A model generated the notes under the pieces. That model ran no database searches. It was not told the DNA's origin and saw only the letters and a list, made by a program, of their open reading frames with translations. Made by a program: the position numbers and the translations under genes. From positions 372,001 through 436,000 of the forward strand of contig CAJFCJ010000002.1 of NCBI GenBank assembly GCA_904063045.1: a DNA stretch of 64,000 nt. Direction: 5' to 3'. This document shows positions 58,981-64,000 of this stretch, in pieces. Every line of letters starts with the position of its first letter. Position 1 is the first letter of the stretch. The stretch comes from Dimorphilus gyrociliatus. Lineage: Eukaryota > Animalia > Annelida.

Positions 58981-59544
58981 ATGTCAAAATCGACAACTAT
59001 ACGGGAAGCTTTAGGGAAGTTAGCAGAAAAAACACACGGAAAGAAATTGTCTGATATTACCGATGTATTATTGAACGCTCAATACCCTCCCATTGAAAAA
59101 ATGGATGCAAATCTTTCACAATTGACTGCTTGTTCTAAACTATCCTTATCAACCAATTGTATCGAAAAGATATCAAACTTACACGGTCTACGAAATTTAC
59201 GTATACTTTCTCTGGGTCGTAATCAAATTAAAAGTTTATCTGGAGTTGAGGCTGTAGGAGAAACTTTACAAGAATTGTGGATATCGTATAATTTGATTGA
59301 AAAATTGAAAGGTGTTGGTAATTTGAAAAAACTGCAAGTTCTATATATTAATCACAACCTCGTTAAAGATTTGACTGAAGTTCAAAGGTTAGCCGACGTA
59401 CTCAGCTTAAGGGAGCTAACCATGATAGGAAATCCTATTGAAGAAAAACACTCAAATGAAGGAGATTGGAGAGATTTAATTAGTCAAAAGCTTCACCAAA
59501 TAAAGCAACTAGATAGCATTCCTTTGATTAGGATGGACAATTAA
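58981..59544 (+). CDS. DNAL1: Dynein axonemal light chain 1 (LRR), intronless
   Basis: TTIREAL...[13 protein letters not shown]...[11 protein letters not shown]...LSLGRNQIK...[16 protein letters not shown]...GNPIEEKH. Confidence 0.96.
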
Positions 59545-60664
59545 ATTTTGATTATTCTATATTATTTATATAGTGGACAATATTTGACTATTTCTGAATT
59601 AAAATAGCCTTTTAATCGTTGTAAGAAGAGATTTGAAGTGTTCGTTGTTGCGAGAATAATAAAGGCCAACTTGTTTGCAGTTCATTGAACATACATAGAA
59701 AATAGGGGGAATCAAGCGCTTAACTTATATTGGCTATTACTGCTTGATCTATTTCCATAAAAGAAAGTGCCAAGTCTTGAAAAGGGTGATCTGTAGACCC
59801 TTTCCTATTTTAGTGGTGCAAATTTCCGTCTCCTCTATACTTAATGCTCTTTTTTTGAATACCCTACTTCAAAGCCTTTACATTCAATTAACAATACATA
59901 CTGTAGTTCAATATATATACAACCTAATATGTATGAACCATTGTGCTTCGCACTTAACCGTATCACTTGGTAAATATAATGATCATCATTCAAAATGACA
60001 AGATTTCATTGTGTATGGTTTTTCGGCGACCCTCTTTGTAACGTAATTCTTCCTATAAATAGAAAAAACACGTAACTGAAAACGAAAGGACCCTTCATTT
60101 TCCGACCTTTTTATAAACTTTAATAATATAGACTTTAACAAATTGATTTATTCATACAATTACAACGTCATAAAGATTGTAGCATTCTCTATTCAACATA
60201 ATTTTGACACTGAACAGTACTCAGCTTGACGTCTAGACCGACGTGTACAATTGCAAAAAATAAAGAGAAACTTCGATTCACAAGTGTAAATCGTTGAACG
60301 AAACGTGTTATATAACATGTACAGCTAAGAGAAAAAGCCTTAAAAATTACTCAAGTGGTCAGACTAAGATAAAGAAAACTTTAAATATGTACATATTTAT
60401 TGTAGTTTTCCTTGTGGAAAAATAAATAGTGTAGTCTATCCTGTTTTATTAAGATTTGTGCTAATTAACAACATTGGTGAGCGTCGGATTAAAACAAAAA
60501 TATATCCGTCTGTAACTGTACATAAATGTCATGATATAGAATTTCAAAAGCAAACAAAACTACTATATATGACTAGAGTGAATATACATTGTTTGTACAT
60601 AAGTAATAAAAACGATAATCTATTTGTGGAAGAGTCTGGTAAATATGAATTCACCACAAATAGA

Positions 60665-61297
60665 TTATTTCAAAATCAAGTTGTCTTTAAGAGGAGGGGG
60701 AAGAGGTAACCGGTGCAAGAGTGCTAATCGTTCAGTTCCTAAATGTTTTCGTATCGAAGTGACGGCTAGATATTTGAGAGGTCTAGGTTGGGCTGTTATA
60801 AGAAAAAGTTACAGATTAGTCATAGATAAAGGTAAAGATAAGGATAATAGGTGAACTCACTCTTTAATTCCGTAAGAAATGCTACTTCGCTTTCAGACCT
60901 CGCGTGTTCTGGCATCAAATAATCAAGGGGCGTTTGACCGGCTAGATTTCGAATAGACAAGTCGCTGCCCCGAGCTAAAACTTTCAATACGGAAAGTTGA
61001 CCGTGCTTTGCGGCTAAATGAGCTAATGTATTCCCATGACCGTCTCGAATGTTCGTGTCGGCTCCGTATTTCAATAAGACCTGATAATAATCAATATAAG
61101 GAGGGGGGCGTTTTTAACGAGAGGATGCAAGGGCTAATAATTACCTTTAATGTCCTAACGTATCCGACCCGAGCGGCGTCGTGCCCAGGTGTCAATAAAA
61201 GACATCTCCCATTTCCTATTCCTCGATCTTGAACATTAGGATTCGCACCAGCTTTTAGAAGTTGCTCAGCTACATCGGGGTAGCTCAAATTCATAAC
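60665..61297 (-). CDS. INK4/CDKN2-like ankyrin-repeat protein with C-terminal SOCS box (exons 61297-61145, 61080-60861, 60792-60665; 5' end unresolved)
   Basis: VMNLSYPDVAEQLLKAGANPNVQD...TPGHDAARVGYVRTLK|VLLKYGADTNIRD...LAHLAAKHGQL resembles p18/p19 INK4. The last exon reads TQPRPLKYLAVTSIRKHLGTERLALLHRLPLPPPLKDNLILK*. Confidence 0.8.
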
Positions 61298-63173
61298 CTG
61301 GGAAAAAAGATAACAATAAAATTAATATGTCAGGGATATGATAATTCAATTTAATCCATTTAATGTAATATAAATATTTGAAATTTTTACGTGCATACTT
61401 GTGCTATGCATAAGCACGGCGTCCGTAATTTATTGCCACATTCACACTTCACTTCAAAGACACCGACTTTCTCTGTTCATTTATTGTATGGCTTTGGAAA
61501 TTTAGTGCGATACATACAAATGACTGTTTGTCTCGTTCAAAAAATTCAATTAAGACATATTTATCGACTGAGTTGAATACCTTAGAGATTATAGGACCCG
61601 AATTGATCAAGGAGGCAACGAGGCGAAAACTTTTGTCAATAAGAAAATGATTAAAGTTTACTCTCGCATGCTTATATATAAAAAGGCGTAATTCAAGCGT
61701 TGGTTTGTTCGTGCGCGCGTTATTTTTTCAATCGTATTTACTTATAAAAGCGTCGCGTTCCTCTTTTTATTAGACTACTTGAGCCAATGAGTACAATGCT
61801 CTGTCAAAGATGCCCCTTGTTGACGACATAATTGAGGAATATTACGTTACAAGAGTGTCTCTATATGTCACCACCACATTCTTTAGCGCACGTACCGACA
61901 AAACTCCCATGCTTATTCAACTTAATACAAGTCAATATTCCATGTTTAATTTTGTTTTATACTATTCAATTTCTATTTGCGGAGTTTTTTCAAGCACGTG
62001 CATATCGTTACTTGATTCTTACATAAAGAATATGTGGATATTGTGTACACATGTTCAATCTTATCAATTCCATCAATAAGCAAACAGGGTCTTATCTTTA
62101 AACATGCTTAGACAATGGAAAGAAGATACACAAAAGACCTGTTTGCACTATGTCGTAAAATGTTTACGACCTATATAGATGCGCGTGTTGGTGTTTGTTT
62201 ATACAACAAATTAACGTGGGTTGCTACGGGTTACCTTTGTACTAGGTGTATCATATATACATCTCCTATGAAGTGCTGAAGTGCATGTCGTATATAAATC
62301 TCTCTGATATCAACCACTTTGAAATAGAATAATTAATTTACATTCACAACACTTAACAAAGGAAACACTCTTTTCTTTTCAGCATCAGCCTTGCGATTCA
62401 TTTCCTTGCGCGCATATAAATAGGTTATTGGTCCATTAGATCTTTGGTTGGTATCTTTCGCCAATGGCGATATCAAGCAGAACACAACAAAATTGACTGC
62501 CACCTTCTCTTGGCTTTTAACGCTTATCTTTTATCTGTCCAAGCTGTCATATTATTAATCATTCCTAGTTTTCTTTATCCTCCAGTTGTTAGAATTATAT
62601 AGTAAATAACAATAAATAAGTTGTAGAGATAAGCCTCATAAAAACCAATTAAACATAGGTCAAACACCTATGGAAACTGTTTACTGAAGGATTAGGGTAG
62701 ATAAGGGGGCTATTGAGGATTTTGCAAGAGTTCTTTATGAATCGAGTATTAAGAACCGAGCTATTATTGGACAATTGGGGTGAAAATTCGGACGGTTGCA
62801 CAGGATTTAGCAATACGTTGTCGTAATACCTATATAAAAGACGAATATACGAGTATGGCCCAAAAAATAAAACGTTAAATCCGGTCAATAACAAAAGTAT
62901 ATAACGTCGTAATAAAACACAAAAGCACTTAAACGTTGACATCTAAAGTAATTATTTACTTTTCAAGCCAATGACTAACATAATATCGCATTACTGAGTA
63001 AAAGTTTTGCCATCATTGGGCCATTGTTTACTCGTTGACATTCAACCATCAACTCGGAATAATGATTTCGTTTCGCTTAGATTTGCACAAGGAGGTTATT
63101 GTATTGATGGAATGTTTAAAGTCTCATAATTATATTCTCTATGTGTTTTATAGTCTATTGAAGATGTACATCT

Positions 63174-63196
63174 CATGCATGCATGCATGCATGCAT
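63174..63196. repeat. (CATG)5 self-complementary tetranucleotide repeat
   Basis: CATGCATGCATGCATGCATGCAT. Confidence 0.9.
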
Positions 63197-63469
63197 ACAC
63201 ACCTATAGGGCATGGTGTCTAACCGCAAGCCATATATTTTCGACACACATAATAATTAGGTGTCAAAGTACTGTCCGTTGAAAACCAGAGATGAGATTTA
63301 TGGGACTAATGTGCAATAAAAAACCACCAATTATTCTGTGCCTTATGATATACTGAATCAAACTGGCAATGCAATTAATAATCAAAGAATCAGCCTCAAG
63401 CCGACTGCTCTCATCAAAGAATACATTGAAGGTCGAAGTAAAAATAAACAATTCTAGCGCCAAAATCAA

Positions 63470-63680
63470 GATTCAACACGCCACACGCTATCTTTGTTTC
63501 CCGCGCGCGCGAATATGCGCCTTCGCCTAAAATGACCAAAAAGTAATTCTACATCATAATAAGCTATTAAAAAATATTTAACAAATTGTCAACATATTTA
63601 AGAAATCCCCACTGCCCTCCCATCAATTCGCTTGTCTACACCTACCAATCATCCCGCATCTCCGCACGCGCTAAGAGTTA
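63470..63680. promoter_or_regulatory. GC/CpG-rich promoter-like island
   Basis: Local GC enrichment, CGCGCGCGCG, CCAAT and CCCGC boxes, and no convincing ORF. The target gene is unresolved. Confidence 0.35.
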
Positions 63681-64000
63681 GTCTGCAGTGTAAATACATA
63701 TGCGTGATGGAATTTTTTAAGAACACGCAGAGGTTTCCTCGGAGGGGATTTGTTCGAGATAAACGGAGTGTAGGGTCGTAAATGATATAGGCCCCAAATT
63801 TTACAACTGACATCTAATTTGAAGACTTTCAATTTGCGAGCTACTAAAAAAAATTTATCCACGCCTGGCTCCTAAAATGCAACGAACGAATCCTAATAAA
63901 AGTGTCAGTTATCCTGAAGTTATAGTAGCTTTTAACAAGTTGACAATAAATGAATTTTATACAATTGAATATTAACGAGCGTTTCCATTTAGAAACAGTA

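Follow-up and report, generated by a model that had tools for sequence, protein, structure and literature searches.

Structure and expression of the locus

The window, that is, the whole stretch of 64,000 nucleotides analysed here, belongs to GCA_904063045.1, the assembly of Dimorphilus gyrociliatus (PMC10212961). Towards its end it carries, on the minus strand, three of the four exons of a gene that combines an INK4-type ankyrin array with a C-terminal SOCS box. The full spliced product has 332 residues, laid out as an N-terminal extension (about residues 1–120), five ankyrin repeats (about 126–290) and the SOCS box (292–332). All intron borders are GT-AG, and exons 2–4 form a single open frame of 166 residues. 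The remaining exon was located in L001, a sequence from the same assembly that was retrieved via the open reading frame of a neighbouring DNAL1-like gene and whose 15,020-base overlap with the window is identical; positions beyond 64000 are given as window equivalents. RNA-type contigs of four runs from four studies were aligned to 59600–64000: X1, a marine metatranscriptome (95–99% alike), X2, a coral-associated metatranscriptome (99–100% identical), and X3 and X5, whose contigs of 1778 and 1711 nt are about 91–96% alike and come from a sister lineage. The features of the gene are as follows.

60131–60664, minus strand: 3′ UTR, followed from the stop codon to 60443 in the X2 contig (99% identical) and to 60131–60165 in X3 and X5
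60665–60792, minus strand: exon 4, 128 nt including TAA, encoding the SOCS box (residues 292–332)
60677–60718, minus strand: Cul5 box, residues 316–329, with LPLP at 60698–60709
60752–60781, minus strand: BC box PLKYLAVTSI, residues 295–304
60793–60860, minus strand: intron 3, 68 nt, phase 1, GT-AG, spliced out in the X1, X3 and X5 contigs
60820–60822, minus strand: in-frame stop within intron 3
60861–61080, minus strand: exon 3, 220 nt, encoding the second half of ankyrin repeat 3, repeats 4 and 5 and the linker
61081–61144, minus strand: intron 2, 64 nt, phase 0, GT-AG, spliced out in the X3 and X5 contigs
61145–61297, minus strand: exon 2, 51 codons, encoding the INK4-type repeat 2 and the beginning of repeat 3
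61169–61183, minus strand: HDAAR, residues 205–209, in exon 2; the D84 equivalent is D206 of the full protein
61298–64000, minus strand: part of intron 1 inside the window; the whole intron reaches the equivalent of 65024
65025–65522 (window equivalent, outside the window; L001 16045–16542), minus strand: exon 1, 166 codons

The preliminary description had placed the exons at these coordinates and had proposed an in-frame, phase-1 splice from 60861 to 60792, and RNA contigs joining both ends bear this out. The X1 contig joins 60792/60861, that is, exon 3 to the SOCS exon, while exons 4, 3 and 2 are joined in the X3 and X5 contigs, in which exon 3 is thus spliced at both ends. The preliminary description would have been refuted by a transcript that stops in frame at 60820 instead of being spliced to the SOCS exon. 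The X1, X3 and X5 contigs all skip this position; given the 60792/60861 join, the transcript does not end there. These are assembled contigs, not raw reads, and a minor isoform retaining intron 3 and ending at 60820 without the SOCS box would stay compatible with them. For the same reason an artefact was considered, with a SOCS exon derived from another transcript or a splice created by chimeric assembly. This is extremely improbable: the same joins, with canonical GT-AG ends, recur in X1, X3 and X5 from separate studies, the public annotation (P0001) independently joins exons 2–4, and both frame and residues are conserved in two other lineages. The gene is transcribed, and its splicing is that of the list above.

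One X3 contig follows the window from 61281 upwards and carries unrelated sequence below; this break, seen in a single contig without other support, could be a chimera or a rare alternative join.

Exon 1, the N-terminal extension and the public annotation

At the 5′ side of exon 2, all four RNA runs diverge from the window at 61297–61300 and enter a common sequence, reading ...TPNSFGRAPLQ/VMNLSYP in translation. Their loose ends match L001 16045–16068 exactly (window equivalent 65025 onwards), which places exon 1 about 1 kb past the window end. There, L001 16542–16045 holds a 166-codon open frame whose ATG lies two codons 3′ of an in-frame TGA and after which comes a GTAAAT donor. The 5′ exon tentatively put forward before, at 61472–61399, has to be abandoned, as no RNA contig splices it and all four runs go to the L001 exon instead; it lacks an in-frame ATG and falls within a conserved block of the intron. 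Ahead of the INK4-SOCS start codon lies a three-codon upstream ORF (ATGCCACAGTGA).

The public annotation divides the locus between two genes. DgyrCDS1016 (P0001, 171 residues) joins exons 2–4 to a five-residue first exon, MGVLS, on the minus strand at 61896–61910; no RNA contig supports this mini-exon, which also lacks conservation (33% in alignment). The second model, a 186-residue protein of unknown function (L001 15982–16542), reads exon 1 past its donor into the intron. The GCA_904063045.1 annotation of the INK4-SOCS gene is therefore wrong, and its split into models of 171 and 186 residues has hidden the architecture from database searches. An AlphaFold2 prediction of P0001 without alignment was unusable (mean pLDDT 43).

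Residues 1–118 of the N-terminal extension (L001 16189–16542) are basic (pI of about 11), with many Ser, Arg and Pro residues. They include several Ser/Thr-Pro sites, among which SPSK fits the minimal CDK consensus, and a RELRY sequence with a loose likeness to a cyclin-docking motif. Searches of Pfam and the Atlas found no relative of this extension, of which 105 of the 118 residues are kept in the sister species.

Identity of the ankyrin array

Exon 3 matches the Pfam families Ank_5 (43.8 bits) and Ank (33.8 bits), and exon 2 also matches Ank families. To place these repeats, we relied on the markers that have been established for invertebrate Cdkn2. According to Yuki et al. 2024 (PMC11555623), the gene is present in seven invertebrate phyla including Annelida and is recognized by the Q50/V51 exon junction, by linkage to Faf1 and by conserved residues such as D84, whose acidic equivalent is the partner of R24/R31 in Cdk4/6. 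All three markers are found in D. gyrociliatus. The junction reads ...FGRAPLQ/VMNLSYP in phase 0, with exon 1 ending CAG/GTAAAT and exon 2 starting after the CAG at 61297. FAF1 (685 aa; Pfam FAF1 and UBX) lies head-to-head with the gene in L001, its ATG 455 bp from that of exon 1 on the opposite strand (L001 16543–16997, equivalent to 65523–65977 of the window), and the FAF1–exon 1 order recurs in the sister-species contig L002. The D84 equivalent is contained in HDAAR, which is identical in the sister species. The INK4 character initially assigned to the repeats thus agrees with the Cdkn2 markers of PMC11555623. A Cdkn2/INK4 protein would be expected to consist of only four or five ankyrin repeats, and since this one, at 332 residues, also includes a SOCS box and an N-terminal extension, it is a variant, not a plain, Cdkn2/INK4.

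Homology searches point in the same direction for exon 2. In a phmmer search of exon 2 against the PDB, designed repeat proteins came first, and the best natural matches were p19, p18, p15 and p16, each INK4 paralogue aligning over the whole exon-2 query, beginning at the residue with which its own exon 2 opens. No ASB chain was found among the best 60 PDB matches to exon 2. The corresponding searches with exons 1 and 3 were swamped by designed repeat proteins, these exons being too consensus-like to discriminate. In the Atlas, a structure search with query residues 6–128 ranked the CDK4-inhibitor-D cluster first, and the language-model features of the ankyrin part were led by the ASB15b, ASB11 and ASB1 clusters, with a CDK4-inhibitor cluster at rank 16; these searches do not separate INK4 from ASB.

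The preliminary description would also have been refuted by repeats that group with ASB proteins and lack CDK4/6-contact residues. As to grouping, the evidence is divided, the Atlas features being nearest to ASB and the PDB matches of exon 2 being INK4 proteins without any ASB; as to contact residues, the D84 equivalent is present. The Atlas features, together with ankyrin repeats so consensus-like that pairwise scores are not decisive, might be taken to indicate an ASB-family gene that became INK4-like by convergence and stands beside FAF1 by chance. We regard this as very unlikely, because three independent markers concur, namely the position and phase of the Q/V intron, the head-to-head FAF1 and the match of exon 2 to four INK4 paralogues without ASB, and because false Cdkn2 candidates fail both the junction and the Faf1-linkage tests (Yuki et al. 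2024, PMC11555623).

Two features of the orthologous array depart from the INK4 pattern in addition to the parts at its ends. The loop between repeats 2 and 3, RGIGNGRCLLL, presumably contains an insertion of roughly 7 residues relative to vertebrate INK4. Likewise, what we take to be the GFLDTL motif of vertebrate INK4 reads GYVRTL in the D. gyrociliatus protein. The loop insertion or the GYVRTL change could alter the CDK interface.

The SOCS box

The translation of exon 4 matches the Pfam SOCS_box profile PF07525 at 34.8 bits, above the cutoff of 23.5 (E 1.9e-8), over profile positions 1–36 of 39, so that the SOCS-box pattern first noticed in the sequence also passes the threshold of a profile scan. 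Its BC box, P295-L-K-Y-L-A300-V-T-S-I304, conforms to the consensus (S,T,P)LXXX(C,S,A)XXX-hydrophobic given in PMC3355856. The replacement of the usual BC-box Cys by Ala, remarked on in the preliminary description, is real (A300), and the fit to this consensus makes Ala an allowed residue. The LPLP sequence that had been read as a Cul5 box, L319-P-L-P322, matches LP-hydrophobic-P, the motif needed for Cul5 binding (PMC4812663). It is unaltered in both related lineages. Within the Cul5 box, Asn328 occupies a position at which the longer consensus, as we understand it, has Tyr or Phe.

Among solved structures, the nearest to the SOCS exon are ASB7 and ASB8 chains, at E values of only 0.6 and 2.5. 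When the 41 residues of the SOCS exon were compared exhaustively, by HMMER, with 1.84 billion representative proteins, no relative emerged beyond the gene's own model. The other significant match of this exon, P0002, is a protein of 506 residues that repeats a PLVYLTSTSYRQHV-like unit in tandem, and is most likely translated repeat DNA, not a SOCS-box protein. Given that no other protein in this search carries a closely similar SOCS box, any capture of the SOCS exon is not recent.

Conservation in related lineages

The locus was also recovered from a sister species, in Logan genomic contigs L002–L006, with its order unchanged: FAF1, exon 1, exons 2–4, DNAL1 and UQCC2. Exon DNA is about 81–87% identical between the two species. 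The spliced orthologue has 333 residues and is identical at 306 of the 332 reference positions. The ankyrin repeats have the lowest pN/pS ratio, 0.05, while the N-terminal extension and the linker both give 0.10 and the SOCS box 0.11; in the latter, 15 synonymous changes stand against 5 non-synonymous ones, 37 of the 41 residues are identical and all changes are conservative. Five differences are listed for the SOCS exon of the X3/X5 lineage, four of them synonymous and one a conservative replacement, Ser to Ala. HDAAR and the INK4-type second repeat are strictly conserved in all three lineages. The conservation in the sister species and in the X3/X5 lineage therefore indicates that all three parts of the protein encode a selected product.

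Taken together, we are highly confident that this is the D. gyrociliatus orthologue of Cdkn2/INK4, a four-exon gene for a protein of 332 residues, transcribed and spliced as described and with all of its parts under purifying selection.

Intron 2 of the sister species (L002 10151–10213) has 63 nt and is in frame and stop-free. Prokaryote-style gene callers therefore read through it, and this is the origin of the protein P0003.

Intron 1 and the neighbouring genes

Intron 1 measures 3.7 kb (L001 12318–16044, for window 61298 to the equivalent of 65024), as against 64 and 68 nt for introns 2 and 3. It contains non-coding blocks that are 90–95% identical to the sister species, above the level of the coding exons (81–86%). 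Examples of these blocks are listed below.

61583–61711: conserved block of intron 1
62881–62987: conserved block of intron 1
64124–64472 (window equivalent): conserved block of intron 1
64576–65045 (window equivalent): conserved block of intron 1

Rfam and tRNA scans found no Rfam family or tRNA in intron 1. The conserved blocks probably act as enhancers of INK4 and FAF1 from within the intron.

Judging from the RNA contigs, the 5′ UTR of the INK4-SOCS gene measures about 280 nt. Considering the 455-bp spacing of the two start codons, the INK4-SOCS gene and FAF1 therefore share a very short bidirectional promoter. The stretch equivalent to 65484–65668 is 95% conserved.

On the other side, an intronless gene of 187 codons (58981–59544, plus strand) encodes a leucine-rich-repeat protein like axonemal dynein light chain 1 (DNAL1-like). 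It is arranged tail-to-tail with the INK4-SOCS gene and has the same position in the sister species.

Distribution and origin of the architecture

In the literature searched, we found no report of INK4/Cdkn2 linked to a SOCS box. The invertebrate Cdkn2 survey of Yuki et al. 2024 (PMC11555623) contains no mention of SOCS or ASB, and Dimorphilus is not named in its main text. In word-index protein searches, the whole of P0001 retrieved only itself, P0003 and generic ankyrin proteins, and its residues 6–56 retrieved P0001 and P0003 only. The same type of search gave no match for the stop-free 97-residue stretch around exon 3, within a length range that ends just short of the 171-residue model. 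A scan of metagenome contigs yielded three generic ankyrin loci and no orthologue. The gene at this locus is real, expressed and wrongly annotated, and it is an INK4 orthologue to which an N-terminal extension and a SOCS box are joined.

INK4 proteins are the textbook stoichiometric inhibitors of CDK4/6, acting through binding to the kinase, and major tumour suppressors. The SOCS box might be ancestral to bilaterian Cdkn2, in which case INK4 proteins would have begun as ASB-like Cul5 receptors that degrade CDK4/6, and vertebrates, perhaps among others, would have lost the SOCS exon and kept stoichiometric inhibition. We consider this scenario quite doubtful. Human CDKN2A presumably has a phase-1 intron just before a very short last coding exon, a weak lead for an ancestral SOCS exon. 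The fusion offers a concrete and cheap test of the origin of the INK4 family, which is to look for a downstream SOCS exon in invertebrate Cdkn2 genes.

Predicted function

INK4 proteins bind monomeric CDK4/6 through repeats 2–3, and SOCS-box proteins couple their bound partner with Elongin B/C-Cul5-Rbx2. Joined in one chain, the two activities predict a receptor by which CDK4/6 would be inhibited as well as ubiquitinated. As judged from the sequence, the ankyrin face would bind CDK4/6 as in INK4 proteins, the SOCS box would recruit Elongin B/C, Cul5 and Rbx2, and CDK4/6, or the complex bound to it, would be both inhibited and marked for ubiquitination. We give this inhibit-and-degrade mechanism about an even chance of being correct. 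If true, the protein would be a natural INK4 brake of the 'inhibit and degrade' kind, akin to what engineered CDK4/6 degraders aim at.

The same architecture would also serve a self-limiting inhibitor. Binding to Elongin B/C stabilizes or destabilizes SOCS-box proteins themselves, and p19INK4d undergoes ubiquitination and is short-lived; the SOCS box might accordingly set the half-life of the inhibitor itself, giving a fast-turnover CDK4/6 inhibitor while the kinase is not degraded. The sequence does not separate this possibility from degradation of the kinase. However, a complete SOCS box with a conserved Cul5 box exceeds the needs of a degron, and ASB and SOCS proteins with a SOCS box usually ubiquitinate the bound partner (PMC4812663), so that we think self-turnover alone unlikely, albeit with some real chance.

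Alternatively, the gene may be INK4 by descent and act now as an ASB-type adaptor for substrates other than CDK4/6, which the altered loop between repeats 2 and 3 or the N-terminal extension might recognize. The loop insertion, the GYVRTL change, the conserved extension of 120 residues without relatives and language-model features nearest to ASB clusters are all in keeping with such neofunctionalization. On the other hand, three lineages strictly keep the INK4-type second repeat as well as HDAAR with its D84 equivalent, and Yuki et al. 2024 (PMC11555623) connect the retention of Cdkn2 in annelids with that of the corresponding basic residue of Cdk4/6. A change of substrate is therefore improbable in our view, though it deserves to be kept in mind beside the predicted inhibition and degradation of CDK4/6.

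Comparison with known systems

The predicted mode of action has a parallel in SOCS1 and SOCS3, which inhibit JAK kinases and also degrade them via their SOCS box and the Cul5 ligase, with a kinase-inhibiting domain and a SOCS box recruiting that ligase in one chain (PMC4812663). The likeness is one of analogy only, since SOCS1 and SOCS3 use an SH2 domain and a kinase inhibitory region in place of ankyrin repeats and act on another kinase family.

With the ASB family (ASB1–18), whose members serve Elongin B/C-Cul5-Rbx2 ligases as substrate receptors, the D. gyrociliatus protein shares ankyrin repeats placed directly before a SOCS box at the C terminus that contains a BC box and a Cul5 box of the LP-hydrophobic-P type. 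In one Atlas search its neighbours, by features as well as by structure, are ASB clusters. Its array is of INK4 type by intron position, synteny and the similarity of exon 2.

With Cdkn2/INK4 the protein and its gene have in common five ankyrin repeats of which the second is atypical, a phase-0 intron at the Q50/V51 equivalents, HDAAR with the D84 equivalent and, as in CDKN2C, FAF1 as the head-to-head neighbour. Vertebrate INK4 proteins are about 160–170 residues long, whereas the D. gyrociliatus protein adds a C-terminal SOCS box and a conserved N-terminal extension of about 120 residues, and its gene has two extra introns.
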